Both the position numbers and the translations under genes were made by a program. Of a stretch of DNA of 64,000 nt, positions 20,801 through 50,100 are shown in pieces. The stretch spans positions 10,761,465 to 10,825,464 of the forward strand of contig CAJINV010000002.1 in NCBI GenBank assembly GCA_905178155.1, written 5' to 3'. The notes beneath the pieces are model-generated. The model had not been told where the DNA came from. It did no database searches and saw only the letters and a list, made by a program, of their open reading frames with translations. Numbering within the stretch: position 1 is the first letter of the stretch; each line of letters starts with the position of its first letter. This stretch comes from Amoebophrya sp. A120 (lineage: Eukaryota; Protista; Dinoflagellata).

Positions 20801-21733
20801 CACGGAGGAGCGGCGAATGCAAACTACAGCCAGCACAGTCACAGCCGCAGTGGCGGCGGAGGCCCCCCCGGCTCCCAAACACAGTCTGCAACAAGAGGAC
20901 CTACTAGCAATTTCGTCTCCAGCCCTCTGCTGCTCGCGAGTTCGAATCCACCATCAAACAATCCCCCACAGAGTCCGCCATTGTTAGTCGAAGGTACTGC
21001 GACACCGGGAGTAGATCCCCATGCCCAGCAGCACGCTTTCAACTCCGGCAGTAGAAGCGGCAGGTCCGGCTCGGTGCAGCCGCACCGTCCTTCGCAGCGC
21101 CGGTCGCCAAGCCCGGCAGCAGCCGATACGTCCAGTCATGACCACCACTCCTCGCAACGCGGCCATTCCCGCTATCCTCCGCGAGCGATTCCGGCACCGC
21201 GCCCGCCACCGCGACACGCACAGGCGGAGCAGCCACCGCCTGCCGGTACAATGGGCCCCCGGCCGCCGGCGGCGCCGCGTGCGCGTCCGTATGACCACCC
21301 GCTGCAGCCGCCTCCCGCCGCCCCCGGACCGACGCCCAATCTGCAACACGCGGCAGACCCACCACCTCCCATGGGGGAAGTCGGTGGTTCGGATCTCATG
21401 GACCTCCTTGTCGACTTCCAACTTCCCGAAGCCGCAGTGCCCGCGGCCGCGGAGCGCAGAATAAGTTCCGGGTCCCCGGCGCGGGCTCAACCGGACGGGT
21501 CGCCTCCCTCTTCAGCGGGGGCAACGAGCGGCGACGATGCGGAAGGAGAAGCACGGGAAGCCGCACTTAGCGAGTTCAGGCGACGTTTCAAGCCGGAGTA
21601 CTATGCGGCGCAGCTGCGCGCCAACCAGGAGATACGCCAGTCACCGTCGTTGGGGCCGCAAGCGGATCCTCCACCAACTGCAGCCGCAGCAAGTAACCCC
21701 GCTGCCGCGTCATCAAGTAGTGGCCAGCAATGA
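14892..21733 (+). CDS. ~2200-aa low-complexity protein with one transmembrane helix and Pro-rich tail (intron 19384-19592 or 19384-19559)
   Basis: ORFs 14892-19457 and 19457-21733 join in frame through a phase-1 GT-AG intron. TM segment ALWVIVLVGVVVVSCAGLACSVGFYAYF; poly-Pro and poly-Gly run at ~19880-19955. Confidence 0.6.
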
Positions 21734-21883
21734 CAACACAGAATTCCCCTCCCCCGATAGCATACACTGGAGTAGATGGATTTTAGACGTACATGCTTTT
21801 TATGCTCCCTCGTACTCCCTCTCCCCCATGGTTTGTATTTGTTTATGTTAATCTATCGAGTGAGCATCACCCTTGCGTTATCC

Positions 21884-22122
21884 GCTGTAATAAATAAACA
21901 TTGAACTGGCTGCTATTCGTATGATCCTGCTCTCTCGTGATTGTGTTTCTTTCTCTAGCTATTCGTCTCCCCGGGGAAAATAGCTATTCGTCATCGTAAA
22001 ACTACGTAAAGCTTTCCACGATCTACGTATGTCGCGTCCCCGGACGCTTTCGGGCTTCACACCTGACTACTCCGCTCCGGCGGATACGTCATCAGGAATT
22101 TGATTTTCCGAAATCTTTTTCC
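21884..22122 (+). repeat. Split direct repeat A1 (239 bp)
   Basis: Identical by eye to 35927-36165. Confidence 0.95.
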
Positions 22123-22753
22123 GGCATCGGGCCTGTCGTCCTTGTATTCTTGCTGGTCCTGTCTCAGGTTCCCGCTAAGAACACAACGTCTTCAGGTTGT
22201 CTCGGAGGGGACGTCACGATCTCAGCCTCCTCCCCTTCTTGCGCTGCAAGTCGGGTCGAGCTGGCTGTGTGCCATCCGTGGTAGCTTTCTTGTGTGTGAT
22301 CTATGATAAATCTCCGGAGCCCTCTCGTTCACTTCAAGCGTTTCTCTTCGCATGCATCAGTCGTTTCGAGACCGACTAGATTTTCTCGCCGGGGTGTTCG
22401 AACCCGCCGGGCGCAGGGCCTTTGCACGCCCCCTTTACGCTTACAGTCGATGTTGCCAAAGATCATTACTACTAACGACGTCTCCACGCGCACCACCACC
22501 GGCACGATGAGGTGGCTTGTTCCATGCGACCTTCCCGGATCCCACGTTCATTTTCACTTTCTGTCCCAGCGCTCGCAGCGCCGCGTTGGTTTTTCACCAC
22601 ATGATCGGACTTGTCTCCTGTACTCTCAGCTCTATGGCACCGTAGTGTTGTTGATCTTCTAGCCGGTAGCTCACTCTGGTAGTATCGCGATCCAATTAGC
22701 AGACGTGTCTTCCTTTTTCCTAAGCATTTCTGTCTCTCTATCGCCGGGACACC

Positions 22754-23722
22754 ATGACGTTAGCCTTCGAGGATATTGCGATGCTGGCAGTCGCATACTG
22801 CGCGGTGCTATTCATCCAGCATTTGATCGAACGCTCTAAGATCCTAGAGCCGCGGACGACTAGGGCGGCCAGCACGCAGGCACCGGTTTCCAAGCCGACC
22901 GCCCTCAGCTTTTTCGGAGTCAACCAGCTAGTAGAGGGACGCCAGTTTTACCGGACGTCGTCCGTCCGCCATTACACAAGCCAGGGACGTTTCGAGTACT
23001 TCGATTTTTATTTTAGTAAGCCGAGTACTGCTCGAGCACCTGTCGTCACCTCCACATGAATATCATGATTCCCCGATAGTACATCGACGCACTTCAATTT
23101 TATATTGCACCTACATCACAGGTTCAACATCGAAGCGAAGCACGGATTCAAGCCGGGCTGCCGGATCGAGCTTACCAGGAAGCAGGTCCAGAACGTTATT
23201 GAAGGACTTTGGTCCGATCTCGTATCGCACTTCTGCGATCGCGCGTCCGATACCGTCGAACGGAGACTGATGTATTATTTACCTTTTCTCTCTCATTCGG
23301 TTGACTGCTTATGCTGATCACGCATGCCTTTTGCTCCACCCTGTAGTTTCGCTAACCCCATGATCTTCGCATTGAGATAACGATCTCTTCACCACACCAC
23401 CAGGCGGGTGCTGATCCTGCGCAAAATGGTGTACTCGAAGCCCATCCACACACCGCTCATTGTGCTAGTCCTCACCGAATTCATTCGCAGCGAGAATTTC
23501 AAGCGCACCTGCTTACCGCAGATGTCGATCCCGCAGCTTTCCGGGGACGTGTTGCAAGGTGACGGTGACTCGCAGCTGGTCAAGAAGCGCCCGATCACGG
23601 TGGATTTGTTGTACGGGGAAGTGCACAAGATTAAGAAGGAAATCAGCCTCTTCTTCTTAACTTTTCGGAGCGACAACGAAGAGGTGGAAGAGCAAACCAC
23701 CGCGGACTACGAGTCTGATTGA
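22754..23722 (+). CDS. Element-borne accessory protein of unknown function, hydrophobic N-terminus (predicted introns 22996-23121, 23272-23403)
   Basis: Two phase-2 GT-AG introns of 126 and 132 nt join ORF-track fragments 22754, 23105 and 23408 into one reading frame. Confidence 0.55.
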
Positions 23723-24373
23723 GGTGCAGATGTGCATCTGTTTCTCCCTAGTGATAGCTAGGCTCTTCGCCTGACCGCAGAGTCAGCTCACATTGACGTC
23801 ACCGATGTTGTCAAGCTATTTTACACGATATATGAAACTCGAGACAGATTTTGACACACGCCACTACCAGCTCCTTGATCATACTTTTCAGGCCAGTCGA
23901 TATATGTGTATCCTGACCATCCTCCCGATATTGAAAGAACCTTGAGCACGACAGCGATCGGCGCCTTTTGATTGCATCCGAGTTCTAGTTCTTCGCGTTT
24001 GCGTCCCATTTGGGTTTTTGCACATTTCCACCGAGAGATCTCAGTTGCAGCAAGCGGGCATGTTGAGACCATGGAGCGGTTTTCTTGAGAGTGTGTATGT
24101 GAGCAACGCGAGAGAAACAGCTTCCTGGCTGTAGAGTGCACAACAGAATTTTTGTGTTTCAGATAACATTGCACTTTCGACAATTTGATATAATGTATTT
24201 CTTAGCAGAATATAGTAGACTTCAGCAAAAGCACATGCCGCGCGCGCGTTCTTCCTCACTCCATTTCAGCCATCACCGCAGCCAAGATTTATCGAGTGCT
24301 CTTGCGCAGGTATCGACCACCGCCCGCGTCAGCACGACCAGCGTCATTCATGATTGCTACTATTTTCTCGTAG

Positions 24374-24733
24374 ATGTCGCAGCTGTATACGTTCGAAGCT
24401 CAGGCAGGCGCAACGTCTATTATTAGTTGCAAAGGACCGTGTAACAACTCTTTTCGCATCAGGGTCGTCACTTCAGATCTAGAAAAAAGGATCACGTACC
24501 TCGGTGGGGAACTAGCCAAATGGCAAGCAAAATCTCTTGAGTTAGAAGAATTAGTAGCTGAATTGCGTGACCAGATAGAAAGCCTAGAGTTTAGCCTGCA
24601 GTGTAAAAACGAAGCCATCACAGCTCTTAAGGACCGAAACTCTCGCCTCCATAACATTCGACTTAACGGGGTAAAACCGGTTAGAATTGAGAACCCGCCA
24701 AAGGTGCCCATCCCAGACGACAGAGATTTTTGA
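24374..24733 (+). CDS. Element-borne small coiled-coil ORF
   Basis: 119-aa ORF with heptad stretch LEKRITYLGGELAKWQAKSLELEELVAELRDQIESLE. Confidence 0.45.
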   Translation: MSQLYTFEAQAGATSIISCKGPCNNSFRIRVVTSDLEKRITYLGGELAKWQAKSLELEELVAELRDQIESLEFSLQCKNEAITALKDRNSRLHNIRLNGVKPVRIENPPKVPIPDDRDF

Positions 24734-24786
24734 TTTTGTAAGTCAGGCTCTACTGCGATTATTCAGCTTTGTTTCTCTCGTGCGTC

Positions 24787-25371
24787 ATGGACTACTACGA
24801 CCCTCCAGATACGACATTTTACAGATCTGATCTTCCACAGTTCGGGCAGAACGTGGCCGTATGGCCAAGTAGCCACGTTAGACGTGACGGCTCCCTGCAG
24901 GCACCAACTTCATTGCCATATTTTTCACAGCCTACCCCTGTATTACGCCCATCGCGAGCAGAGTATCTTCGCAATCCGTTTCGAGTCACGCCGTTCTTAG
25001 TTAGCGTTAATCCAGACGCGAGAGTTTATTACACGCAGTTTGGAATTTGGGTCGTTCTCGATCTTTACATCTTAGACAGCAGATTAGCCTACGAACTCGT
25101 GTTTGAATTCTCTGGAGAGGGATACCTTCGCGGTTTCCACGGATCCCGCGAGCACCACAGAGACCACACTTCCTACCGGTACGAGAGCCGAGGGGAAAGT
25201 TACACGCAGCTGAACTACCACCCCACCGAGCCCTACCCCTACCGCGAACCCGACCAGCATCCGCCGGGACCCGCCGAGCGTGATTTCGCACACGTAGCGT
25301 GGCAGCGCGAGCGCGCGAACTTCTTCCCTCTCCCATTCGGTCTTCCTTCTTCCAGTTCGACCTCAGAATAG
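24787..25371 (+). CDS. Element-borne ORF of unknown function
   Basis: ~194-aa ORF ending 21 nt before the gag-like start. No motif recognised. Confidence 0.4.
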   Translation: MDYYDPPDTTFYRSDLPQFGQNVAVWPSSHVRRDGSLQAPTSLPYFSQPTPVLRPSRAEYLRNPFRVTPFLVSVNPDARVYYTQFGIWVVLDLYILDSRLAYELVFEFSGEGYLRGFHGSREHHRDHTSYRYESRGESYTQLNYHPTEPYPYREPDQHPPGPAERDFAHVAWQRERANFFPLPFGLPSSSSTSE

Positions 25372-25392
25372 CCACGTCGCATTGGCTCCAGC

Positions 25393-28300
25393 ATGACTAA
25401 GCCAGCAGCAGGCATAAGTAGCGCAGGGCCTGCCCCCAAAGCTACCCCTTCCTCATCCAGGCAAAAAGGAGGATCCGGCCCCGCACCCGCCCCCCAAGCG
25501 AGCAAGGGAAATCTTGCAGGTGCTGATGCAGGCGCCGCCAGCAGTAGTAGCGCATCGGCGAGCAGTAGCATCCTTCCCGCCCCGAAATCCGGAAACCAGG
25601 ACACCGCCACGGCCAACCAGCCGGGACCAGCCCCCCGAAACAAGCTGGACTCTATCACGGAGGTCTTGCACATGGACCAAGGTACCCTTGATTGGGACAC
25701 CATCGCCGCACCCAAGGCAACGACGCTGCAGTCGCCGAGCGCCAAAATTGCAGCTTTCGTCGGCTACTCCATCTTACCCGCGCTCGAGTTGCGGGCGGGC
25801 GGCGAAAACTTCGGACAGGAAGATATTGAGGAGTTGTTGCAGTTCACGAACGAAGAGCTGGAAAAGCTCAGCACAAGCATGAACATTGATCGGGAACAAC
25901 TCCCCCTCGGGCTGCGGAATGGCCGGCCCGAGCAAACCCCCGCCAACTGGAACGTGTTCAAAGCGTTCAACGACGCCATAAGCGCCATCCAGGATACGAG
26001 CCAGCTGTTCCAGAACGAGCCGAAAAATACGTTCATGACAACGTCAAAGCTGCTAGTGCACGCGATGTTTGCGCTGGGCCGGTTCGCCACCAAATCGGGC
26101 TGGAAGGACATCCCGCAGGACGTGTTGCTTGACGCGGCCATGTTTACTTTTCACCTGCCGGGGGCAGGACTCGAGTTCTGCAAGATCATCTACAAAGTAT
26201 TTATTTTCCCCTCATTTTTTCCACGATTCCATGACGCCCATCATGCCTAGACACACACGCCACACAAGATGTTATTCATACTTTCCCCTCTCCTTCATAC
26301 AGGTAACGTGTGCGCTCAACGCCACGCGCGAGCCGCACCTCCAGGGATACGATTTCTGGCATCCAGTGCTGAAGGCTGCGTTCTCCACTTCGGGACCAGC
26401 GCCTGGCGACCTGAGGACGTTCAAGCTCGCGAAGCTCAACTTGCGCCTCACGCTGTTGCAGTGGTACGGGCCCATCAAGATGGACCTGTATTCCGACCAT
26501 TTGCACCACTACCTGCAGAAAACCCTGAAAGCGATCTTCCAGACGATCCCGGACAATTTTGTATTGCAAGAGAACCCAACACCACCCAACGCGGCGGACA
26601 TAGCCGAGAAGTGGCCTTTCACCGAGACAGCTACTATCGCGGATGTGAGGAAAATAGTACGAACGGAAGCCGCGAACAAACGCACCGAGGCAGAAGCGAA
26701 AGCTCGGTCCGCGGCCGCAACCAGCATCGCGAATGTCCGCGCACACCGCGACCGGCTACAGCATGAGTTGACAGCGGAAAGGGTGCACATCGAGTCGTAC
26801 CAGGGAATGGTGGCTCGGATGGAGAAAGAGCAGGACAGCAAGCAGCTACAGCTCACGGAGGCCTTGCTGAAGACCGCCGAGCTCGAGCGCGACATCGCTC
26901 AGCAACAGCCGCCCACGCGGCTCGATACCGGCGCACCGCCACCCCAGCTGCATTCGCCACTGCGGCGTGCACCGCGCGGGAAGGACACGCTAATCGGTGC
27001 GGTACCCCGACCCGACCTGAGCCGTGTCTCGCAGGACCCGCAGGGCGAGTTGTTTTCCGCGGAGTGCGGGCACTCCTTCAAGCGCGGAGGACCGCCTTCG
27101 AGCTCACCCAGCTCTGACTCGTCGAACCTTCGTGACGTTGCTTTCGGTTACAAAGACGACCAGCACGCGTCCGTACCACGGCCGACCAAGCACAGGAGGA
27201 ACAGCGCCCCTAGCGCCTCCCCAGTGCACGACGATCCACTGAACCATTTCAACGACACTCGGTTCCAAGGATTAGGAGCTGAAGATACGAATTGCAGATG
27301 GTATGAGCGGGAGGATCCATTCGAGCCGGCGCAGAGAGCCACCGGCGGCGACGACCGGCGAACGAGGTCGGGGGACCCCCGCCCCGCCCCGCGCGGATTC
27401 ATGCCCTTCTTCGGGTTCCCGGGCGCCCCCATATGGGGGAGCATGCCAAGCTTCGCTTCCATGTTTGGTAGCCGCTCTCGGTACGCGGACGATACGCGAG
27501 ACGCGAGCGCTCTTAGCCTGGCCGCCCGGGATAAAATCAGGGATAAGATGCCGCACCACGAGATTGAGAATAACTTGACTAACAACCACGGCGAGCAGTC
27601 ACCATGGGCTTTTCGCGAGCTGCGGTACCTGATCCATCAGGACTTCAAGCAGCACCGATCGCGCAAACACGACGGTATATTTCTAGCTTGGTTCTTCTAT
27701 TTTTCTGATGCATGAATGCTTTTGACTTTCAAGTCGCGTGCGCTCTATTTATTCATCCATCTCATTCCCTCTCGCCACCAGATACCTGGGAAGACAGCAG
27801 GGTAGCCGCGTCACACACGCTCTTGTACGGCATTACAACCCGCGAGCTTCTCATCGAGGCAGGGCAGAGATCAGATGGTGCTGACCTCACGCAGTTTGAG
27901 GCCCTAGTTACCAGCTTAGCAGCGAACAAGCTGTTGGTGAAGGAGCGCTGGGATAAGATGACTGAAGACAGGGCTAAAATCCCGACCGACCCAGCGAAGC
28001 TAACTTGGCCTTTCGGCTTCTCGGCCGCCGACAAAGCGGACGCCCTGGAGCTGCTAGACGACATCATCTCTAAAGCAAGTTCCACAACTTCCACACAAAT
28101 GAGCATCCTCTTTACGCAGCACACCGCCACGCTGCACGATCTACAGGTGCTGGTGCGCAAGCTAGGAAAGGAGATCGGGAAGCATAAGAAGTCCCACCCG
28201 CACGACATTCAGTCGTACGATTCTAAGGAGCTACGGGCCCTCGCATCGACCGAATTCCTCCACACGTTGCTGCTGATCATCCCGTTCACGCTGACCGATT

Positions 28301-29628
28301 TGTACAAAAATAGGACGTGCGAGCTCTACGCGCTATTGAAGAATAAGATCCAGGACGCCGGTCTCTGCGAAAAGTTCACTAGCAAAGATACTTCGAAAGC
28401 GTTGCTCTTGTACTTCGAGTACTGTTTGGATTGGCAGAAAGAGATCAAAGAATTCGCGAATAAGCCCAAACCGGAGGAACGCAAAACAGCCGAGCAAATC
28501 CAGCCGCCGATCGACCGCTTTATTAAAGGTGCTTATTTGTAGTTTTCCCTCCAGATGATTTTTGCTGCTATCAGTACGCCATGACCTCTGTTAATTATTC
28601 TCATTATTCTTCGCAATCCCCCCCTACAGTTCGTTCTCGATTTTCCCACTTCTCAGATGTGGGCCAACTCCCGGACGCCGCCAAAAGTTGGACCGAAGAA
28701 GCAGTTGCGGGTGTGGAAAAAACGAAGTCCTCCAAAGGATGGACGACGTCGATTCGTGCCATCGCGCACAGACACAACCCGAAAGTCAAGGAGCACGCAC
28801 CCAACCCAGGCGGCAGCCGCAGCCAGGGGAAGGGTCATAAAACCGCACAGAACCAGACCCGAGGTGACCGACCTACCAACCGGGGTGATCGCGACTTCCC
28901 GTACAACCCGCGTCCGCGGTTCGGTGCGAATGGAAAAGGTTTCGGCAATCAGTTCCGCGACTGGGATTGGTACGGCGGAGGCGGAGGCGGCGGCAGAAGC
29001 CGCCAGCTGTTCAGCGCCAACTACCAGAGCCAGTACGGAGGGGGCTGCGATTTACCCACTTTCCACCAGGGTCACAATCACCGCATTCGTCCAGACCGCG
29101 CATCGTATCGGGATTACGACTACCGCGATCGCGCGTGGCAAGACCACCACTACGGCAGGGACCAGGAGCGACAGCAGCCGCCCCCACCCGCCGCCCCAGG
29201 AGGGGGAGAAAACAGAACCCTCCCTCCGGGCTCGAAGGGCGCCACGAAGGGCGACCTTGATGCCAAAGGTACACTTTTTCTTTGTCATGTAGTTGTCACA
29301 GCGACATTTGTCGCCGAGCATGCGACATCTCGATCCCCATAGCATTCGCATTGTTCATTTTTCATCTTGATTATTATCAGGCGGGGGAGGTAAAGGCAAC
29401 ATCCCAGTCTTCCGGCAGAAGCTGATCACCGGTGTCTACAAGAACAAGGCTACGCTCGAGGAACTCAAGGCAGACAACAAGCTGTGCACATACCATTTGT
29501 GTTGTATCAACAAAGTCAAGAACGATAGGGGAGCGATCATCTTCTGCCAACCCACAGGGAACAACAAGTGCACGAAAGACCACTCGTATACAGAAACTAA
29601 GAACGCCGAATACCTGAAGAGAGCGTAG
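25393..29628 (+). CDS. Gag-like protein of the YR retrotransposon, 5 exons (introns 26197-26302, 27675-27781, 28529-28656, 29269-29380)
   Basis: Four T-rich GT-AG introns of 106-128 nt each restore frame. The product has a coiled coil, an R/G-rich region and a terminal Cys/His cluster (CTYHLCC...FCQPTGNNKCTKDH). The gag assignment rests on position and this cluster. Confidence 0.78.
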
Positions 29629-30456
29629 TGTTAAATTAAAAAATTTCTCGAAAATATGAGCTATATTTACTTCTCTCGAGCTGGAAGCCGTATCGTTCCA
29701 GCTTTAGTATTACGAACGATCGCGACCACCTAGACACGCTTCCCCACACGAACATCAGTCGTGTGGTCTCGTCAATGCAGATTATCAGACATTTTTATTT
29801 TTGTATTTTTCTTCGCTCTATGAACTATATTTGTTGACTGCATTACAGATTCTGGTCGTAGTAAGCGTTCGAGCTGAAGACCCAATACCTACCCCGAACG
29901 AGCACTACAATCCAAGATTTGTTATTGATTTGTGATTTTTCATCACGTAAATATCTTGTATCGCAGCTGTGAGCATGGCTTTCGTCTACCAGCTACGAAT
30001 AGCTATCAATTGAAAGGATGACAGGGACGTCATTTAGGCACTCGTAGCATGCATTGCACGCATGTGCAGGCTCTCCGTTCTCAAATATGCGTGTTCACGT
30101 CGTCTAGCAATTCGTTCTAACTTTCTCCTCGGACACTCTACCTTGCACTAGAGTCATCGTAGTAGTTCGGACCGCCTCAGTCGTCAATCCACCGGATTCT
30201 ATCGCATTTCTGTCGTTGCTGTGTCGTACGCATTCGTTCGGGGTCGTAGGGGCATCGCATTGACGATTCTAAACACACCTCGTAGACTTAGCATAGTCGT
30301 ATCCAAGCTACACTACCCCCGCATAGTAAAAGCCTACTCACCCTTAGAACATCTAATACAAACCATTTCACTAGGCCGTACTCTAAGCCGCTGTTTTTTG
30401 CTTGTTCTACATCTTTTGTATCATGCAGTTGGATCACGCCGTGATTTCTTCCTAGA

Positions 30457-31167
30457 ATGGCACAGCGTAGCGTCATCTTTCGCCGCCGCATTCCCAATTC
30501 TCAGAGGGTCAAAGACCTCATCGTCGACGAAGAGGTGATAGTCGAGGCGCGGGACACCGAGGGCAATACAGTCTGGGATACCAGCCTCGCGGAGCCAGTC
30601 CTTACTGACAACCCGCTGCACATACCGAAACCGCTACAGCCGCGAACTCGCGTCCACCCGTTCGCGGCGAAGCAGCAAGACGCTCGTAAGAGCGGTCCGA
30701 ACGGACGGCGGGCGGGTACCCCGTCCCCAACCAAGGAATCGCGCGAGAGGTGGATTCTGCAGGAACATCCCACCTTCTCCCCGCCAGGGTGGCGAGAGCG
30801 GGAGCGAGCCCGGAAAGGCGTCGCAACGCTCCTCTGGACCAGCGAAGCCCCTCCTCCGAGGAGAGAAGCACCGGAGTATTCACCGGACACCGTGAAGTTG
30901 TGGAGCGAGTGGCAGAACAGAAAGGCAGCAAAGCCTCAGGCTAAATCCTTCACTGACCCCGGCATTTCTACTGTTGGCAACGTCTCATCTGCTTCCGACC
31001 ACCAGTTGCAGCGTCCAGCTAAAGTCAGGAGGACATCGGAACAGCAGTCCCAGCCGGGCCCGTGGAACACGATCTTTCTGTGCGTTAGCGATGCCGCGCA
31101 AGCGGGTGCGAAAGAGCAACAGCAAGAAGCAGGGGGAGCCAAGAGCTCCTCCGCCCGCCAAGCGTGA
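30457..31167 (+). CDS. ORF overlapping the pol 5' end; possible first exon of pol
   Basis: 236-aa ORF. A hypothetical GC-AG intron at 30940-31018 would fuse it in frame to the RT ORF. Confidence 0.4.
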   Translation: MAQRSVIFRRRIPNSQRVKDLIVDEEVIVEARDTEGNTVWDTSLAEPVLTDNPLHIPKPLQPRTRVHPFAAKQQDARKSGPNGRRAGTPSPTKESRERWILQEHPTFSPPGWRERERARKGVATLLWTSEAPPPRREAPEYSPDTVKLWSEWQNRKAAKPQAKSFTDPGISTVGNVSSASDHQLQRPAKVRRTSEQQSQPGPWNTIFLCVSDAAQAGAKEQQQEAGGAKSSSARQA

Positions 31168-33571
31168 ATGCGCTTCATGGGACGAATGCGACCTTCTGAC
31201 GCCCGAGCGGAGAGCCGCGCTGGATCATCTGCGGAAGCTGCAGCAGTGGGATGCTGCCACCAGGATCGCCATGGAGGAGCAGCGAATTCAGGGGATACTT
31301 GACGACCTAGAAGCCCACCTGTTAGCAAACGAAATCGAGATTCAGAAATATGAAGATGAGAAACCTGTGCACATTCACCAGATAAACAACTCCTACCTAG
31401 GCACCGACCCGGGCTTTCCAACGCGCAAACTGAACGTATTCGCGTTGAACTACTTAGCCGAAAAAAGCGATTACTTGGACGCCGAGAAGCGGTCCATGTT
31501 ATATGGACTTTCCGGGTTCTGCAACACAGGCTTCCCTTCGGAAGGCCTAGTTCCGGTGTATGGCGCCTGGCCAGGCGGCAGGAAGCTATCACCAAGCGAG
31601 CTGCAGCGGGTGCAAGACTTCAGCTTCCACGACCCGCTGCGCCACGCGAAGGTGCAAGCAGCCCGAGCAGCGCAGAAAGCGCCTAGCTGCGACGATGATC
31701 TCGACATACACGAGAGGTGCTACCAGGCCTACGAGAAGCTCCAGAAGAGCGGCCTCGCAGAGCCTATCGACTCGTCGACGGCGGAACAGATGATGGGGAA
31801 AGGGGCCTACTTTGTGGACGTTTTTGGTTTAGGTCAACGGCCAGACGACACGGGCCGGTTTCAGAAGGTCCGTCCGATTTCAGACGAGTCCGTGCGAAAC
31901 GAGGAGCTGTCACCCGCAACGGAGCACATGACTCTCCCAGGCATCCCGACAGTGATGCAGGCGGCGTTATACGCGCTTAACCCGCAATTCTCGTCCCAGT
32001 TCGCACAGGACAAGAGAGACGTCTTGAAATCCATCAACGAAGGCAGAGCAAAAGCAGCAGCATTGGGGAACAAGAAGATGGCATGGACAGACTTGACAAC
32101 TCTTCCCGAACCGGAGAAGGCGTTCGGGGGCCGTTCCTTCATGCCGACGTTCTGCAAAAATGATTTGCAGCAAGCATACTTTCAATTCGGCGTGCACTCG
32201 CCGGACAGAAATATGTACCGGATCTTCAACTATGGTTTGCAAAAGTATCGCACTCGCATTACATTTTTCTTCAGCATGAGAAACTATTTTTGTAGCGCGG
32301 CTTTGACTTGACATGGCTTTTGTAATGCACATTTGCATCGCGAGTGCGATACTTTTGCACAAGATATTAACCCGTCGACCATGAGCTTCGAATACGGTAA
32401 ACTTCTCACCTTGAACTTCGGAAACGTGCATTCGGTGTTTGGATTCGTGGGGGGAATCAGCGAGCTGTTGAACTGCTTCCTGAACAAAGTGCTGCTCGTG
32501 CCATCCATGGTGTACATAGATGACATCATTACCGTCTCCGACGGAGTTTTGGACACGGTGTACAGCAATGCAGTCCGAAGACTGTGCCAGATAGTGGGCA
32601 TCGCGGTGGCACCCGACAAAGTCGAGTTCGCTAATTTCTCGGAGAGCTGCGAAATCCTCGGAGTTTTGTGCGAGGTGTCTAAGGAGCAAATTTCTTTCTC
32701 CCTATCGAAGAAGAAAGTCGCGCTCATCTGCGACGAGATCGACAAGGTACTACGCAGCCTCGCGAAGCGCAACCCGCACTCCCACTTCAAGAAGTTGCAG
32801 AAACTGCAGGGAGTGCTCATGTATGGGCTCTTTTCGAGAAAGTACAAGAAGGGGATCCCTTGTGTCAAGCACCTGTACGACCTGACCGATACCGCCGCCA
32901 AATTCCATGAGAAAATAGCGCAGCCGAAGGTAGTCGAGAATCTAGTAGTCATGCTAACCAAGGCCAGGGCGATCATCGCCGCCAACGAGAAGACCACCAT
33001 CAAGGCCGAAGCCGCCACTAGAGCGCGAGTACACCTGATGACAGACGCCTCCGCCGACGCGGGGCGAGTGGCCTACGGAGGAGTTTTGTTTACCGCCCCG
33101 GGCAAGTCCATCGGGTACACATTGCATCGAACCGAGAAGCAGTTGCCGGACTTTGTCAAGCGATCGTGCATTCTTACGCACGAGTTGATAGCAGTGGCGC
33201 TCGGTGAACGCCTTTTTCGCGATTACCTGCGGGGGCGGAACTGCATTTCGCATGTGGATAATGCCGCCGCGACTTTCGGCATCATCAAAGGAGATTTAAA
33301 AGGAGCCAAGCCAGCAGCTGCCGCCTCGTCGCTTTGTGCCCGGCTGCACAGCGCCGATTCGTGGTTCTACCACGGCTACATAAACACGCATCTCAACGTT
33401 TCGGATGCGTGTACGAGGAAGGATATGTTCGACGAATTGTTGAGCAAGTACGGAACCGAATTCCCGTTTTCTGAACAAGAAGTTCTCAGCACTTTGAGCG
33501 ACTTTGTTAGTGAGATGGAATGTTTGTACAATGATTGCAATTTGGACGCGTTTCGAAAGACGAAAGTATAG
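31091..33571 (+). CDS. Reverse transcriptase-RNase H (pol), interrupted by an introner at 32231-32371
   Basis: KVRPISD, KNDLQQAYFQ, LNFGNVHSVFGF, VYIDD (YIDD 32513-32524), EILGV; RNase H MTDAS, HELIAV, HVDN, NVSDACTR. Confidence 0.92.
32231..32366. mobile_element. 136-bp TIR introner/MITE inside the RT gene
   Basis: Perfect inverted repeat GCAAAAGTATCGCACTCGC / GCGAGTGCGATACTTTTGC; ends TAT...ATA; flanks TCAAC and TTAAC. It contains the in-frame TGA that splits the RT. Removing 141 nt gives YRIFNPSTMSFEYG. Confidence 0.85.
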
Positions 33572-34006
33572 TTTCTTCATCATCTACATTACGTTTTATT
33601 TTTCTTTCATGGCGATCTACCGACCGGACCAGCGCTCGCTGTACGTAGCTTTTTGTTTCTTCTTGGCACATTCAAATGATTCTAACACATCTACAGGCTT
33701 CAGTTGCATGCTCAGCATCTAGATGAGCACCTGCCACGCACACAGAGCGCAGGTGCATCGCTTGAGCACAGTCATCAATGTGTTCTTGCCGACATCGGAG
33801 CGCTTCGCTCGGACAAGAACGAGAGATATCAGGTCCCCGAGAGTAAGATTCGCCCGTGTGCAATAAGATCAGAGCCCTCGATCGATCGAAATAATAACAA
33901 ATCTACTTCCTGTTTCCAGTATGAACCCTTAAAGATCAGCACTATTCCCACGGTGTTGTAAGCAGCAGTATGATCATCCAAATTCCACAATAATAGGCAA
34001 TAGGAG

Positions 34007-35433
34007 ATGTTGCTAAGTCACGAATTGAAAAAGGCGCGGATACGCGCAGTCCCGCCCAAGGACTTAGCAGGCCTTAGTCGCGGTAATCAAAACAATTACT
34101 ATAACGGTCCGCGAGAGAGACTAGACAACTGGGCCACCGCGATAAGAAACAAAAGAACCCCACCCGTAGTCTCTAGATATTACAGCAATTTATGGGCCAT
34201 GCCCGACGATTTGGTGCTGGCTATTTGGCCGGAAGAGGAGATCTTTCTCTCTACGGAGTACGGACTCAGCAACCGCAATTCAAAGTGGCGGGTCTGGATG
34301 TTTTGGTGCATGAAGTTTGAGCCGAGGCTTTTTATGAACCTCGCGCACGTGCCGCGAGACCGCGACGGACTAGCCACCTTACGACGGAAACACCCAAATG
34401 TCCTCTGGTCGGATCTGCAGAGATTCGGCCAATTTTTGGTGGATCACGACTACGGCGACCCACTAGTGTACCTGTCGCTAGCGGGGCAGCGTCTGAGATC
34501 TCTCAATGGACTCGAGAAGACCAACGGATGGAGAGGATCGCTCCAGACGCTCACATTCGAAAATGTGAAGCGCATGTTGGAACCGATGTTACGGGCCAAG
34601 GCCATCCCGCCCGACTTTTCCCGCACCAAGTCGCTGGCACCTAGGGACCTGCGGATATTCCTACAGTGGTGGGTTACAGGACTGCGGCCCAAATCGTTCA
34701 TATCCATCAACCCGCAGATCGCCCGGGTCGACCCAGACGATGCGAGCCTGATGCTGATCACCATCCCCAGCATGAAATGCTTACCCACGCCGGGAGAAAC
34801 ATTTCAGGTATGTCTATCATATTCTTGTTTTCTTTTTTGCAAATGCATCACCAGTAACGACACACGGTATCAACTCATGCGAAGTATTCTTTTACTAGAA
34901 CTGTCCTACTCCATCCCCTCCTACCCACCACACAGGTACGAATACCCTCGAACATCTGGCACCCGGACGTCTTTCCGGTATCAGTACGCGACATTAATCG
35001 CGTAGCAAAACAGATGGGCACAACGCCGTATGGCCCCAGAAGAGGTCTAGCGATAGCCCTGAGGATCCGTGCCCTCCACTTCAACTACCTCCCAGGTGGA
35101 TCCAAGCGCCAGCGCGAAGCTTACGACCGCTACAAAACCAAAGTGAGCCGGTGGATGGGCTGGTCGCCCAAGTCCATGATGTGGGAAAAGGAGTACAGCG
35201 TGGATGTCATAGACTACCTTGAACACTCCTTCCTCATGCACCCAGATCTAGAACGATTTTTCACCGTGCACCCAGCCGAGCTCGAGATGCCGCCAAGCGA
35301 TGACGTCCCCTCCGACGACGAGCAAGAGCTGGAAATGAACGATGAGAAGTACGCGCTTCTAGACTCTGACATACTAGATTTCTTCAACGATGTGGGACCA
35401 GCTAGAGATGCCGCCACGCTCGAAATCCAGTAA
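34007..35433 (+). CDS. Tyrosine recombinase (2 exons; intron 34808-34935)
   Basis: Box I WVTGLRPKS, box II YGPRRGLA (H replaced by Y in HxxR), MGWS...EKEYS with the candidate catalytic Tyr. A phase-0 GT-AG intron joins ORFs 34007 and 35014. Confidence 0.85.
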
Positions 35434-35651
35434 AGAAAAGCGAATCGAGATCTTCACTTTTTCTTTTGAACACCATTGGCTCGACAGCATGCACAATCAA
35501 ATCACTACTCGCAATCAGGACTCAGTGGATCCAGGCACACTAGAAGTCTCGTCCTGGTTTTCTCGTAGCGCTACGCTAGTGCACGCTTCACATGCTCATG
35601 ATCTGTACCAGCTAATGATCAAATCTCGTGCCCAGAATGTCTCGCCAAAAT

Positions 35652-35926
35652 TGGGTTCAGAGTGCATTGCCATAGACTCAGTAAGCCCTTGCGCGCCCGC
35701 GCCAAGGGCCTGTCGATGATCGTTCGCGTGCTCAACGAGATCAGCCTCGATCGCAGCTCGATCATACCGGAATCCGTTCTACTGAGTTTGCGCTTCCTCT
35801 TGTCCAATTGTTATTGGCGTTCGAGTTCAGCGCGGTCTAGTTCGACTGCTATCTAGAAACTAGAAACCAAATGTATTCGAGACCAGTATCTCATAGCAAG
35901 AGTTGCAGCTAAGTTCAAGTTTATTT
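35652..35926 (+). repeat. Split direct repeat B1 (275 bp)
   Basis: Identical by eye to 36232-36506. Confidence 0.95.
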
Positions 35927-35956
35927 GCTGTAATAAATAAACATTGAACTGGCTGC
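35905..35956. other. Candidate YR recombination (att/lox-like) site at the B1/A2 junction
   Basis: 22-bp imperfect inverted arms GCAGCTAAGTTCAAGTTTATTT and AAATAAACATTGAACTGGCTGC flank an 8-bp spacer GCTGTAAT. Confidence 0.7.
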
Positions 35957-36165
35957 TATTCGTATGATCCTGCTCTCTCGTGATTGTGTTTCTTTCTCTA
36001 GCTATTCGTCTCCCCGGGGAAAATAGCTATTCGTCATCGTAAAACTACGTAAAGCTTTCCACGATCTACGTATGTCGCGTCCCCGGACGCTTTCGGGCTT
36101 CACACCTGACTACTCCGCTCCGGCGGATACGTCATCAGGAATTTGATTTTCCGAAATCTTTTTCC
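35927..36165 (+). repeat. Split direct repeat A2 (239 bp)
   Basis: Copy of 21884-22122, directly abutting B1. Confidence 0.95.
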
Positions 36166-36231
36166 CACCCGCTGCTATTCACGCCACCTCATCGCAGCTT
36201 TCCCTCGCCTTTTTCCTGGGGACGCGTGTGA

Positions 36232-36506
36232 TGGGTTCAGAGTGCATTGCCATAGACTCAGTAAGCCCTTGCGCGCCCGCGCCAAGGGCCTGTCGATGAT
36301 CGTTCGCGTGCTCAACGAGATCAGCCTCGATCGCAGCTCGATCATACCGGAATCCGTTCTACTGAGTTTGCGCTTCCTCTTGTCCAATTGTTATTGGCGT
36401 TCGAGTTCAGCGCGGTCTAGTTCGACTGCTATCTAGAAACTAGAAACCAAATGTATTCGAGACCAGTATCTCATAGCAAGAGTTGCAGCTAAGTTCAAGT
36501 TTATTT
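36232..36506 (+). repeat. Split direct repeat B2 (275 bp)
   Basis: Copy of 35652-35926; right end of the element. Confidence 0.95.
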
Positions 36507-37226
36507 ATACCCCTGAAAATTCAGCGATTTGATGAACATTGAATTAACAAAAAGCTGCAGCTCTTCATGTTTGATCACATAGAAAGGGGCCTTGGTTGCC
36601 AGTCGTGAATGATTGACCCAGCGTCTCAACAGATAAAGAGTCGTCGAGTCTTTCGACTGACATCGCGAAGGCTTTAAAAAGCTAAACGCAGTTCCATGTT
36701 CAGTACCGCGATATTCAGCGTCGTCAACTGTTCCCGATTTCGTTTCCATCGGTAGTTCACAGCGGTACTTCTAGACTTTATTTTTCCCGTCTAAGTTTTT
36801 GTGAGACAACTAGAGCAACAAGATCGGAAAGCCTAGAGTTTTGTTGTCTTTAAGTATCTTGTTGTCTTGCACGTTCTGGGGTTCCAAAGACCACCGATGT
36901 TGTACACTTGGTCTTCCGAAGTGTTGCCTCCGCGAATGCGATGTGGTATTCGTCTTCTGCTCAGATCCAGACAGCGTGCGCCCCGCGCAGCCTGCACATT
37001 ACCTTCTCGCACTCAAGTGTTGTCGGTAGAGTAGAGGTACTAGTCGCGAGGCCCAGCAATGTTTGGTTGCGCGGTTGCCACCTCCTAGAAGATTTTTGTC
37101 TTTTTTCTACGGACTGATCGATGTGCGAAATACAGCAGGAAAAACATGTTGTGAAGATTCTTTCCTCGCGCGGAACCCCCGGGAGCGAGTTTTTCCGTGC
37201 CCCCGCGTCGTTCGGGGGCCCTCGGA

Positions 37227-40200
37227 ATGCTTGTTCGATCTGGCCTGCGCCGCTTTGACCGAAGCGAGGCTTTTCTGTACCTGCAGCACTTCCATCGATT
37301 TGCAGAGGAGACGTGCCAGGCCTCGGGTCCCGGCCGTGTCGCCGTGAAACGTGCAGTGCTGTTTGCTGCACAGGATTTGCCATTGTCTCGTCTCGTGGAC
37401 GCCATGACGGGTGTCGACAAGAAAAATGGTACACAACAACAGCAGCGAGAGCGGCTTGGGGCGCTGCTGCGAATCTCGAAAAGTGAATGTCCCGTTGTGC
37501 TGCCCAGCAAGAAGCGGTCGCGCAAGAGCACGGAGCTGAATCTACCCGACGCGGAGGTGAAGGAAAATATGAGCGTGCGCATCGTCTATGCGTGCAAGCG
37601 GCTCCGACGTTTTTTCCAACAGCCCGAGACCTTGACCTGTCGCGGGTGCTCAAAGAGAACAACCTGTGCGCTGTTCAAAAAGCCCGCGCCCCCGGAGCCG
37701 ACGACGGCGGACTGCGTGGACGTGGTGAAAGTGCTGTATGGTCTGGCGCAATACTGTAGGGGCTACTTGGAGGAGCAGACGAGGAGCAATACTGCTTCGA
37801 CCCCCGCAAGCGCGGACAAGAAAAAGAGGCCGAACTTCGTACCTCTGGACCGAGCACCAAAAGACATCACAGGAACGCCGGAAAGTTCCGCGACGGAGCA
37901 GGGACGAGAGTCCGGGTCAGTGTCGGATGGACCAAGCCCTCAAACGCTGCTCTCTTCCGCTATCGTGTTGCTGGACAGCTTGGGGAAAATTATCCTCGAA
38001 CAGCAACAGCTAGAGGTGGCGAAGTTCGGGAAAAGTTCCAAACTCCTCCCGGACGTGCCCATCGCGGATCCGCAAACGGCGAAGCAGCTCGCGGAAGAGA
38101 TCAGTTTGAAGAAGGAGCAGATGAAGCTGGACCGGAAAGAGGAGCAGATTCTGAAACTGCCTCCGTGGCTGCGGGATTCCCTGCGGCCGGTCATGAGCAA
38201 ACACATGAACGCTCGCCAGAAGTTTCTGCTGAAGCAACGCGAGAAAGCCGACATGGAGGCCAAGAGCGCTGCGGAGTCGCAGTTCGAGGGCAACTTCGTA
38301 CCGGAACTGGATGTTGTGGACGAAAATGGGATGGCGAGGGTGAGTGCAAACGCTGCTGGGAGCAGCACACTTCCTGCAGCAAATTTCGCTTCAAACTACA
38401 GCTCGCCCTCAAATAGTAATTCCGTCCAGGACCTGAACTCTGATCTGAGCCGCATGCGGATTCCGAAGCGGTTCGAGGAGATCCAGAAGCCCTGTAAGGT
38501 GGACACAATTATCCAGTTCAACGCGACATACCAGCGGTACGTGGAGGGCTTGACACGAAAGCGCAGCCGAGTGAACACGCGGGAACAGGAGGACGTGATG
38601 ATAGATTTGGACAAGTATTGGGAGTCGTGCACAGCAGACGTTGCCAGTCGACGGGATGATGCTGCTACAATTGAGTGCGAGGAAGATCTTCATGCAAGTC
38701 CCGAAGCCGAATCCGAAAAGGGTGCACGTGATGCTGCAACTACAGCAACGGAAAGCAGAACAAACAGTTCGGCAGCTGCAACTGGGAGTGATATTACGCC
38801 TGGTCAGGTGGACGGAAACAAAGACAACCAACATTTGGGTTCTTCGAACATTTCCATGGATGCACAATGCCTGAACACTCCGATCGAAAGCAGTACACCG
38901 AGCGGCACAGAAGCAGAGCCGTTCGTGGGAAAGAACACAGAGAGTAAAGACAGTCCTTCCGGTGGTCCGCTCTCCCCCGTGGATGCGTTGTTTGCGTCTT
39001 TGGAGCGCGCGCACCAGGAAAAAATGACACAAAATGCGAGGCGGAACGATCATCCTGCCGCTGGTCGTGAGAGCGACTCATCTTCCGGTAAAGAAGATCA
39101 TACCGTACTGACTGCGGACAACGATCTATCAAAAGGAAAAATCCCCCCTCCCCATATCGAAATGGAAATCTGTGATGCAGGATTTGGGTACACAAATCGG
39201 ATCTGTCTTGCAGTAAGGCATCGCAGCCAGCTCCTCGGCCTAGGCAGGGGCGTATAGGTCTAGTTGCTTAGCATTGCAAACGGGTGCCCCCTAGGCGCAA
39301 CAGCGTGCCAAATCGCTTCCATAATGGTGCGGAAGCCTCTGCGCCTGTCTTCTTGCAAGACAGACGTGATTTGTGACCTCAAATCAGCAACGCAAATTTT
39401 CGGAAACATACCTTTTCGATATGGGGAGGGGGGATTTTTCCTCTCAATACGATCCTGATAGCCGATTCGTGGAGCAGCGAGGTGGCTACGCGAGCCTGGA
39501 TCTCTCCAACCCGGACGAGTTTCGACAGAGCGCGCTCGTTCCAGCCGAGGCGCTGGACGCAGTTTCCCCATCGAAGCGCGCGTTGGAGGGGGTCCACGTT
39601 TACCGCAACGCGAGCGACGACCCGGCGTTGGCGAAGCAGCTCCGGGAAATTCTCGCAGAGAAGCGAAGTGCCTCAGGTAGTCGTCTTTCAGATGACGATG
39701 AGGAACACTTCGCAGCAACTTCGTCCTCGGTGAAGACGCGGAACGGCCGACTCAACCACCAGGAAATCACACAGGACGAGCGTTTGCAGGTGTTCTCGCA
39801 GGCGGATTTCGGGCAGCTGCTTTCGACGGGCGGTAGCGACAGTGGGAACGATTTGAAGTTTCTGAGGCGAGTTCCCTTCGACGAGCCAGCATCGCGTTCG
39901 GGCGGGACAGTGCCCGATAAGACACTGGCACTGGCTCTGCGCCACCACGACGTGCAAAAATCGGGACTGGTGTCTTTGCCGGATTTCGATGCGCTGATGG
40001 CGACTGCGCACGCGGAGCAAGAAGCTTTTTCTAGTTCAGAGCGGGAACGTGAGCGCAACAGCACCGGCAGCCACGTCCGAGGAAATGTAGGGAGGAATAC
40101 CACAAGCGTGATTGAGAGCACGGAGACGGCAAGTGAAAGCCACTTAGCAGCGGACGACGAGGACTTTGTGGAAGATGAAGACGACGTGGAAGACGACGAA

Positions 40201-45940: not shown

Positions 45941-46046
45941 AGCGCAAGCTAGTCCAGTTACTCGACTTTTATAAAAACATGCGCTACTTGCGCACGGACA
46001 CGGAGGCGCTAAGCCTGCGCCAGACTCTGCTAACCTTGCCCAAACA

Positions 46047-49000: not shown

Positions 49001-50100
49001 GCGCGCGGGCTTCCATGCTGGTCTGGGCGCAAAAAGGCGGCCGGGCTGGGGAGGCGACAGCCGCGCACAACCTGGCGCCACTTGCGCGCGGACTTCCATG
49101 CTGGTCTGGGCGCAAAAAGGGGGCCGAGCTGGGGAGGCGGCAGCCGCGCACAATCTGGCGCCACTTGCGCGCGGACCCCCATACTGGTCTGGGCGCAAAA
49201 AGGGGGCCTTGCTGGGGAGGCGGCGGCCGCGCACGATTTGGCGCCATTTGCGCGCGGACTCCCATGCTGGTCCGGGCGCAAAAACGGGGCCGAGCTGGGG
49301 AGGCGGCAGCCGCGCACGATTTGGAGCCACTTGCGCGCGGGCTTCCATGCTGGTCTGGGCGCAAAAACGGGGCCGAGCTTGGAAGGCGGCAGCCGCTTAC
49401 AATCCGGCGCCACTTGCGCGCGGGCTTCCATGCTGGTCTGGGCGCAAAAACGGGGCCGAGCTGGGGAGGCGACGGCCGCGCACGATTTGGCGCCACTTGC
49501 GCGCGGACTTCCATGCTGGTCTGGGCGCAAAAAGGGGGCCGAGCTGGGGAGGCGGCGGCCGCGCGCGATGTGGCGCCACTTGCGCGCGGACTTCCGTGCT
49601 GGTCTTGGCGCAAAAAGGGGGCCGAGCTTGGGAGGCGGTGGCCGCGCACAATCTGGCGCCACTTGCGCGCGGACTTCCATGCTGGTCTGGGCGCAAAAAG
49701 GCGGCCGAGCTGGGGAGGCGGCAGCCGCGCACAATCTGGCGCCACTTGCGCGCGGACCCCCGTGCTGGTCTGGGCGCAAAAAGGGGGCCGAGCTGGGGAG
49801 GCGGCAGCCGCGCGCAATCTGGCGCCACTTGCGCGTGGGCCCCCATGCTGGTCCGGGCGCAAAAAGGGGGCCGAGCTGGGGAGGCGGCGGCCGCGCACGA
49901 TTTGGCGCCATTTGCGCGCGGACTCCCATGCTGGTCCGGGCGCAAAAACGGGGCCGAGCTGGGGAGGCGGCAGCCGCGCACGATTTGGAGCCACTTGCGC
50001 GCGGGCTTCCGTGCTGGTCTTCGCGCAAAAACGGGGCCGAGCTGGGAAGGCGGCAGCCGCGCACAATCCGGCGCCACTTGCGCGTGGGCATCCATGCTGG
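46047..50100. repeat. GC-rich satellite, ~83-bp unit, ~49 copies
   Basis: Unit GCCACTTGCGCGCGGACTTCCATGCTGGTCTGGGCGCAAAAAGGGGGCCGAGCTGGGGAGGCGGCGGCCGCGCACAATCTGGC; period seen at 46067 and 46150. Confidence 0.97.

Follow-up and report, generated by a model that had tools for sequence, protein, structure and literature searches.

An intact, intron-bearing tyrosine recombinase retrotransposon of Amoebophrya sp. A120 whose introns appear to be inherited with the element

The window analyzed here is a stretch of 64,000 nucleotides from Amoebophrya sp. A120, a dinoflagellate that lives as a parasite (contig CAJINV010000002.1), and its positions 21884-36506 hold a complete tyrosine recombinase (YR) retrotransposon of 14.6 kb, which is intact and recently integrated. 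The coding sequences of this element, a gag-like gene, a reverse transcriptase/RNase H (RT/RNase H) gene (pol) and a YR gene, are interrupted by predicted introns that apparently travel with it from insertion to insertion. As our best explanation, to which we assign a probability of about 0.62, we propose a recent, intact element of the DIRS order and of Ngaro layout that belongs to an intron-bearing clade restricted to Amoebophrya and is copied via unspliced RNA.

The element is built around two split direct repeats and is ordered A1, gag, RT/RNase H, YR, B1A2, spacer, B2, with all features on the + strand (Table 1). A first-pass annotation, made from the letters of the window, had placed its ends exactly and had reported both repeat pairs as identical, which they are (239 and 275 bp, 100%): 0 differences were found across the 514 bp of the A and B pairs, and the two mismatches of a first repeat comparison fall in the 6 flanking bases just outside A. 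The same annotation called the insertion intact and recent, a view borne out by the identical repeats and by the confirmed RT/RNase H and YR. The combination of RT/RNase H, YR and the absence of a target-site duplication places the element in the DIRS order, and its structure is the one by which Ngaro elements are defined (PMC3783388), a class assignment made by layout and domains. The PAT-like definition does not fit (split direct repeats are present, a methyltransferase was not detected in pol), nor does the DIRS1-like one, the repeats being direct and no long inverted repeats being found in window positions 20000-39000.

Five GT-AG introns, four in the gag-like gene and one in the YR gene, are predicted to be spliceosomal from their borders, from the reading frame restored by their removal and from the continuity of the joined exons with intron-free homologues. 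They are 106-128 nt long and pyrimidine-rich, contain stops in most frames and have a GC content of 0.41-0.43 as compared to 0.55-0.58 in their flanks, and we found no terminal inverted repeats, direct repeats or genomic copies for them (genome searches covered the 115.5-Mb assembly). The gag introns were also considered as introners, a candidate that was rejected upon a 9-kb genome search without further copies and without inverted repeats. A frame-blind scan of the 14.6 kb recovered four of the five introns (gag introns 1, 2 and 4 among them) and one other place (30299-30455), a GC-poor, pyrimidine-rich GT...AG segment of 103-130 nt between gag and pol and outside the assigned genes. The initial count had been at least seven GT-AG introns of 106-132 nt; five of these stand, the insertion in the RT described below had been left out of that count, and the remaining two, in a putative accessory ORF (open reading frame), are plausible, composition being their support (GC 0.42-0.45 vs 0.56-0.59 in the flanks). 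This accessory ORF has no homologue in the related elements and no Pfam match.

In order to place these introns, the relatives of the element have to be introduced. At the DNA level the window family consists of one full copy and one 548-bp fragment, while comparison of proteins shows many RT+YR elements in the genome. In the RT tree, which covers elements of A120 and proteins of Amoebophrya AT5.2, clade I is formed by (window, C13) and (C12, (C7, (C9, C1))) together with AT5.2 proteins, and clade II by C2b, C8, C21 and C5, whose long ORFs are not interrupted. The A...B-A-B layout is present in 6 of the 10 relatives fetched (C7, C1, C8, C12, C9 and C2b), with repeats that are 97.5-100% identical and lengths of 11-13 kb; repeat pairs are thus near-identical inside each lineage, though the lineages differ by >30%. 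The first-pass annotation had taken a single-copy or domesticated element as evidence against its proposal. The window family is indeed single-copy in the above sense, whereas domestication does not describe an element surrounded by a clade of relatives, most of them low in copy number.

Comparison with these relatives revealed shared intron positions. Gag introns 1 and 3 recur in the C13 element with residue position and phase unchanged (intron 1, LEFCKIIYK/VTCAL in the window vs TDFCQVLFT/QLQAY in C13, with a similar donor GTATTT; intron 3, PPIDRFIK/DVGQLPDAAKSWTEEAVA in the window vs PSLDEFVA/GVADLHRIAEEWSEEAVA in C13; the slash marks the junction). For gag intron 2, C13 has an intron of the same phase, phase 1, at a like distance upstream of the conserved LAANKLL block (43 vs 45 aa), placing it within ~2 residues. 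The gag-like exons of the two elements share 25-49% amino acid identity, and in RT and YR 70-83% of synonymous and 20-34% of non-synonymous sites differ, with the non-synonymous proportion (pN) far below the synonymous one (pS). The YR intron has the site and phase of a 118-nt GT-AG intron in the annotated A120 gene P0001 on C12 (PGELNM/VHLPAGIF), and its flanking exons abut flush (PGETFQ/VRIPSNIW) on C13, P0002, P0003 and 10 AT5.2 proteins. As the A120 annotation is transcript-based (PMC7789003), the removal of the P0001 intron has indirect RNA support. Lastly, C1 and C9, with 96% identity across 10.1 kb, have their introns in common; as they cease to be homologous where B2 ends, they are separate insertions at different loci.

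Clean single-intron absences were likewise observed in sister lineages. The YR intron is absent in C13, C7 and C1/C9; the YR introns of C1/C9, which lie 8 codons downstream in phase 2, were examined as its homologues and rejected. Gag intron 4 is missing in C13, where one ORF reads through the site, and C13 in turn has an intron of its own in gag exon 3. The Cys/His motif of the gag-like protein was sought in other lineages to polarize gag intron 4 and was found in the window element and C13 only. A search for intron-free copies with the annotated spliced protein P0001 yielded none, the C12 family being single-copy.

A different kind of interruption lies inside the RT palm. This in-frame insertion is not GT-AG bordered and bears an in-frame TGA (32309-32311) upstream of the YIDD motif; it belongs to a family with >40 genomic copies at ~75% identity, TAT...AAAA termini, a 20-nt exact inverted repeat and 5-nt duplications that are perfect in 8 of the 10 copies aligned. 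According to the A120 genome paper, >60% of the introns in this organism are non-canonical and ~30,000 are of the introner type, beginning with TAT followed by ~7 bases and a run of A and carrying inverted repeats as well as direct repeats of 3-5 nt, and RNA-seq shows their precise removal without GT-AG (PMC7789003). By these hallmarks (TAT, ~7 nt, A-run, inverted repeats, short direct repeat, many copies, non-GT-AG borders) the RT insertion reads as an A120-type introner, its host gene differing in being a retrotransposon RT domain. All RT paralogues and the AT5.2 proteins read RIFN/P... without it. A canonical GT...AG pair within the introner was tried and rejected, 22-23 extra nt remaining and the frame being broken; since no GT-AG pair restores the RT frame, the RT would depend on non-canonical, precise introner removal by the host. 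Hence, of the open gag, RT/RNase H and YR frames reported initially, gag (five exons) and YR (two exons) hold, whereas RT/RNase H is split by the TGA-bearing insertion (32231-32371).

This split raises the possibility that the copy was dead on arrival or is non-autonomous, the TGA of an unremoved introner truncating the RT before YIDD so that the element merely looks intact. The position of the TGA, the lack of a GT-AG pair restoring the ancestral frame, the single-copy status of the family and the absence of visible expression in the RNA runs (27000-32999) would all agree with this scenario. We nevertheless regard it as improbable, as RNA-seq shows precise removal of such introners in A120, with no GT-AG involved (PMC7789003), and as the annotated C12 gene P0001 has a like introner, of 249 nt, removed in-frame along with a single copy of the direct repeat CAGCC that flanks it (L017:9391-9639, minus strand; G000:C12 ~1,157,391-1,157,639; beginning TATCCAGAGTGAAAA), which makes it a second introner in a gene of these retrotransposons. 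Moreover, the target-site duplication of the RT introner (TCAAC/TTAAC) contains one substitution, and this sole change is synonymous (TTC to TTT) whichever copy is retained.

The same substitution bears on the age of the introner. The duplication is already substituted while the element repeats have 0 changes, which argues for an introner older than the window insertion; given 0 changes in 514 bp of repeats, a change in the duplication after integration is unlikely (by our own estimate ~1-3%). Taken together, the gag positions shared with C13, the YR site shared with C12 and the introns common to C1 and C9 indicate that introns travel with the element, and several interruptions, as judged from these comparisons, are older than the window insertion and are found again in further lineages or copies. 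The initial view of the introns as heritable parts of the element is thereby upheld, by positions shared with diverged lineages, by C1/C9 and by the aged introner duplication.

Alternatively, the introns might have been untransmitted, having entered the resident copy, or each copy separately, amid massive introner spread. The ~30,000 introner-type introns of A120 (PMC7789003), the membership of the RT interruption in one such family and the extra interruptions that every related element has of its own are compatible with such colonization after insertion. This reading is very unlikely, however: the five GT-AG introns lack inverted repeats, direct repeats and genomic copies, three of them match C13 in position and phase and one matches C12, C1 and C9 have introns in common, even the introner has an aged duplication, and eight insertions while 514 bp of repeats gained 0 changes would be implausible.

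How the introns were transmitted depends on how the element is copied. RT and RNase H catalytic motifs are kept in all lineages, and purifying selection on RT/RNase H together with homogenized repeat pairs points to copying through RNA, with both repeats regenerated from one template, in agreement with the standard model of split-repeat YR elements (PMC7192593). RNA copying combined with inherited sense-strand introns would in turn mean that the template is usually unspliced and that translation requires spliced mRNAs; unspliced RNA is therefore the most likely template. The competing possibility of DNA-only mobility, in which the YR excises and reintegrates a double-stranded circle at a lox-like B/A junction in the manner of Cryptons, would keep the introns trivially and make the RT dispensable. 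It finds agreement in the persistence of introns and introner across copies, in the palindromic, recombination-like site conserved at the B/A junction, in the Cre-like YR and in the absence of a target duplication. Conversely, it leaves unexplained why RT/RNase H motifs are kept under purifying selection in every lineage; near-identical repeat pairs despite synonymous saturation between lineages are predicted by template copying and not by cut-and-paste; and the clean single-intron absences are most easily obtained via spliced RNA. We accordingly give DNA-only mobility a low likelihood.

For copying via unspliced RNA, we suggest a model in which a full-length transcript reaching from within A1 to within B2 would escape splicing and be reverse-transcribed, with the internal B1/A2 junction supplying the missing ends to give circular DNA. 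The B/A junction of this circle would form a lox-like site in which inverted arms of 7 nt enclose a spacer of 8 nt, and the YR would integrate the circle without target duplication at T-rich sites partly matching the end of B. Separately processed spliced mRNAs would be translated into gag, pol and YR, genes that each have an ATG of their own, RT function relying on precise introner removal by the host, and occasional copying of partly spliced RNA would produce the precise single-intron losses of sister lineages. In a more far-reaching version, which we put forward only tentatively and do not favor, the whole clade would practise a retrovirus-like split between an unspliced genome RNA and cis-spliced (perhaps also spliced-leader trans-spliced) mRNAs for its proteins, with introners copied along by reverse transcription. 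If true, intron positions would be stable over saturating divergence, and a DNA-type mobile intron would gain a second, RNA-based route of spread. An antisense template, as the first-pass annotation had suggested, would account for intron retention without any escape from splicing, sense splice signals being meaningless on RNA of the opposite strand. That suggestion is its sole basis; we found no antisense ORF, promoter or read evidence, and the split-repeat logic, with ends taken from B1/A2, works with RNA of the sense strand, following the standard model (PMC7192593), so that this alternative appears remote.

Several points weigh against copying via unspliced RNA. In DIRS-1 of Dictyostelium, a marker intron engineered in the sense orientation is removed by splicing and no longer present in new copies, the opposite of what is seen in the Amoebophrya clade, so that retention is not general to the order; DIRS-1 resembles the window element in belonging to the DIRS order, in having YR, RT/RNase H and gag and in restoring its ends from an internal junction, and differs by inverted terminal repeats, an internal complementary region and a methyltransferase domain (PMC7192593). 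Intron retention is equally expected under movement as DNA. The distribution of the YR intron on the RT tree (present in the window element and C12, absent in C13, C7 and C1/C9) equates to two losses or two gains, which fit equally well. With one full copy and one 5' fragment, intron transmission within the window family is not directly visible. Finally, three shallow RNA runs together with one contig set (X3, X4, X5 and X7), in which the presence of the organism is not shown, gave 0 reads on 27000-32999, a stretch that ends before the YR intron; in X7, ~2% of the words of 26000-35999 were present.

The enzymes on which these considerations depend are too divergent for the Pfam models. Pfam was run on all 18 ORF pieces, first at standard and then at loose thresholds; exons were searched singly, or uninterrupted paralogues were used, and exons were joined just for the stop check and the junction peptides. 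At standard thresholds there was no match for any of the 18 pieces; at loose thresholds, pol gave weak matches to RVT_1 (E 0.014) and RT_RNaseH_2 (E 0.081), and methyltransferase, protease and DDE integrase domains were found in none of the element ORFs at either setting. Relatives from Amoebophrya AT5.2 reach the RVT_1 gathering score, and a profile of the RT paralogues matches a group II intron RT in the PDB (E 4e-5). An AlphaFold2 (AF2) model of 32372-33568 (pLDDT 76) matches the RTs of cauliflower mosaic virus (CaMV), Moloney murine leukemia virus (MMLV) and Ty3 at probability 1.00, and RNase H1 with a TM of 0.75. Pol contains YIDD in the RT and DAS...E...DN...D in the RNase H and ends ~50 aa past the latter. 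By profile, predicted fold and catalytic residues, the predicted RT/RNase H identity is thus confirmed.

A similar line of evidence applies to the YR. A 53-sequence profile, built from a full database scan, matched Cre, XerA and XerD at E 1e-3, with 21 of 22 matches being YRs and with conserved R, K, RR, W and Y columns; a smaller, 6-sequence profile matched no recombinase in the PDB or Pfam. For the C13 orthologue, which has no interruption and is 71% identical in exon 1, the AF2 model (pLDDT 84) adopts a two-domain Cre-like fold and matches Cre/Tre at probability 1.00 over ~360 columns, with XerH and lambda Int as next matches. Profile, modelled fold and catalytic residues together identify the YR as Cre-like. 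The gag-like protein, in contrast to a family assignment by homology, owes its label to position, a coiled coil and the Cys/His motif shared with C13, none of the 18 ORF pieces giving a Pfam family for it; its frame is open across the four introns upon exon joining.

The palindrome across the B1/A2 junction (Table 1) fits a circle junction serving as a recombination site. The B/A junctions of C7 (L028), C1 (L030) and C12 (L017) share this plan (ATATTT, a spacer of 8-9 nt, AAATAT), with arms that have changed and are still complementary; in these palindromes the arms are AT-rich and 6-7 nt long, and the element terminus lies at the border of arm and spacer. Target-site duplications are absent in the window (flanks ...gttatcc on the left and atacccc on the right) and in C7, C1, C8 and C12. 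Left flanks partly repeat the end of B, with TTATcc vs TTATtt at window 21878-21883, TATTT vs TATTT at C7 region 2297-2301 and ATCTTT vs ATATTT at C1 region 1427-1432, and these matches suggest that T-rich sites sharing a short stretch of homology with the circle junction are used for integration.

Table 1. Features of the element and their positions in the window
Feature	Position	Strand	Remarks
A1, left copy of split direct repeat A	21884-22122	+	239 bp, 100% identical to A2
Putative accessory ORF, unverified	22754-23722	+	three open segments in one frame
Candidate accessory introns	22996-23121, 23272-23403	+	126 nt and 132 nt, in-frame GT-AG
gag-like gene, five exons	25393-26196, 26303-27674, 27782-28528, 28657-29268, 29381-29628	+	coding sequence 3783 nt, 1260 aa
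gag intron 1 (predicted)	26197-26302	+	106 nt, GT-AG, phase 0, GC 0.43 vs 0.57 in flanks
gag intron 2 (predicted)	27675-27781	+	107 nt, GT-AG, phase 1, GC 0.41
gag intron 3 (predicted)	28529-28656	+	128 nt, GT-AG, phase 1, GC 0.42
gag intron 4 (predicted)	29269-29380	+	112 nt, GT-AG, phase 1, GC 0.41
pol gene with RT and RNase H, in two coding parts	31091-32230, 32372-33571	+	start MPRKRVRK
Introner inside RT palm	32231-32371	+	141 nt in-frame: 136 nt plus one 5-nt target duplication
YR gene, two exons	34007-34807, 34936-35433	+	open across intron
YR intron (predicted)	34808-34935	+	128 nt, GT-AG, phase 0
B1, internal copy of repeat B	35652-35926	+	275 bp, 100% identical to B2
Recombination-site-like palindrome across B1/A2 junction	35920-35941	+	TTTATTT-GCTGTAAT-AAATAAA
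A2, internal copy of repeat A	35927-36165	+	239 bp, directly adjoins B1
Spacer between A2 and B2	36166-36231	+	66 nt
B2, right terminal copy of repeat B	36232-36506	+	275 bp, after the spacer

Kangaroo elements have split direct repeats, and retroviruses and env-bearing long terminal repeat (LTR) elements copy unspliced full-length RNA while spliced RNAs are translated. The latter division of labor resembles the one proposed for the window element; retroviral splicing, however, removes whole upstream genes, whereas the small introns of the window element lie within coding sequences, so that each protein would need splicing. Kangaroo-1 of Volvox carteri is a YR retrotransposon with introns identified in transcripts, as cited in PMC1636488. 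Penelope-like elements also keep introns after retrotransposition (PMC8557442) and differ by an unrelated RT clade, a GIY-YIG endonuclease, target-primed copying and the lack of YR, gag and split direct repeats. With Ngaro-type elements (PMC3783388), the window element has in common the split direct repeats A1...B1A2...B2, the gene order gag, RT/RNase H, YR and the absence of methyltransferase, DDE integrase, protease and target duplication; it differs in its 14.6-kb length, the 1260-aa five-exon gag-like gene, an ATG for each gene, at least five predicted spliceosomal introns plus one introner, and an RT and YR beyond the reach of Pfam. SymbioDIRS of Symbiodinium, compared here by description in the portion of PMC5890265 at hand, similarly have a dinoflagellate host, an 'A-coding region-B-A-B' plan and an RT missed by Pfam seeds; those bearing a DNA methyltransferase (DNMT) have a cytosine methyltransferase in pol, none being seen in the window element, and that portion makes no mention of introns. 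The designation of an undescribed system was consequently too strong, with the Ngaro-type layout known, and already reported for dinoflagellate DIRS-like elements (PMC5890265), and introns of kangaroo-1 cited (PMC1636488). Our literature search retrieved no paper on multi-intron YR retrotransposons with conserved intron positions, or on introners within them.

Retrotransposition is expected to purge introns, and an RNA intermediate is conventionally proven with marker introns, DIRS-1 being one such case. If a clade retains introns in coding sequences through copying, this would imply some means of keeping the spliceosome off its genomic RNA, and that in a host with splicing that is unusual to begin with, >60% of introns being non-canonical and trans-splicing being in use. 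The clade also represents a case in which mobile introners invade the catalytic domains of another mobile element and are tolerated there. As a natural system, the clade could be used to address how the fates of unspliced and spliced transcripts are separated outside retroviruses, how frequently introns are precisely lost through reverse transcription of spliced RNA, and whether DIRS-type circles integrate at a lox-like site. The A120 genome paper does not mention DIRS-type elements (PMC7789003); the elements of this clade are missing from the published Amoebophrya repeat description, and current Pfam models miss them. Word-based homologue searches found almost nothing outside Amoebophrya, the database relatives being A120 and AT5.2 proteins and unnamed contigs.

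Further observations concern the relatives of the element. The 548-bp fragment (G000:C4:3635823-3636369; L014, L025:3824-4370) begins exactly at the start of A and is 89% identical to A1 and the next 309 bp, by which it appears to be a truncated 5' remnant of the window family. In C13 (L026:1518-2239, ~2973-2987; G000:C13), an insertion of ~720 nt lies in the RT, 15 codons downstream of the site of the window introner, and the frame changes near the RT end; no A/B repeat pairs were detectable in this element save a 28-nt match to the end of B, and it has probably decayed. The AT5.2 gene models P0005-P0010, P0018 and P0085 (EukProt EP00392), of 926-2155 aa, have RT/RNase H and YR fused in one protein, and their N-terminal parts of 1000-1200 aa showed no similarity to the window gag. 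The clade II loci (G000:C8 4127-4141 kb, C2 9867-9883 kb, C21 246-258 kb and C5 2877-2890 kb; L022/L032, L024/L034, L021/L031 and L023/L033, respectively) have uninterrupted ORFs of 1098-1229 aa upstream of the RT and contain few introns if any; between C21 and C5, identity is 99.8% over the compared parts. These upstream ORFs were considered as intron-free gag references and rejected, a hidden Markov model (HMM) search having found no homology to clade I gag.

In the surroundings of the element, two long ORFs of 758 and 686 aa adjoin it on the same strand (window 19457-21733 and 37197-39257), neither with a Pfam family. Further downstream, 4 kb of the window (46001-50000) have a GC content of 72% and a strongly positive GC skew, well in excess of what the remaining sequence shows.

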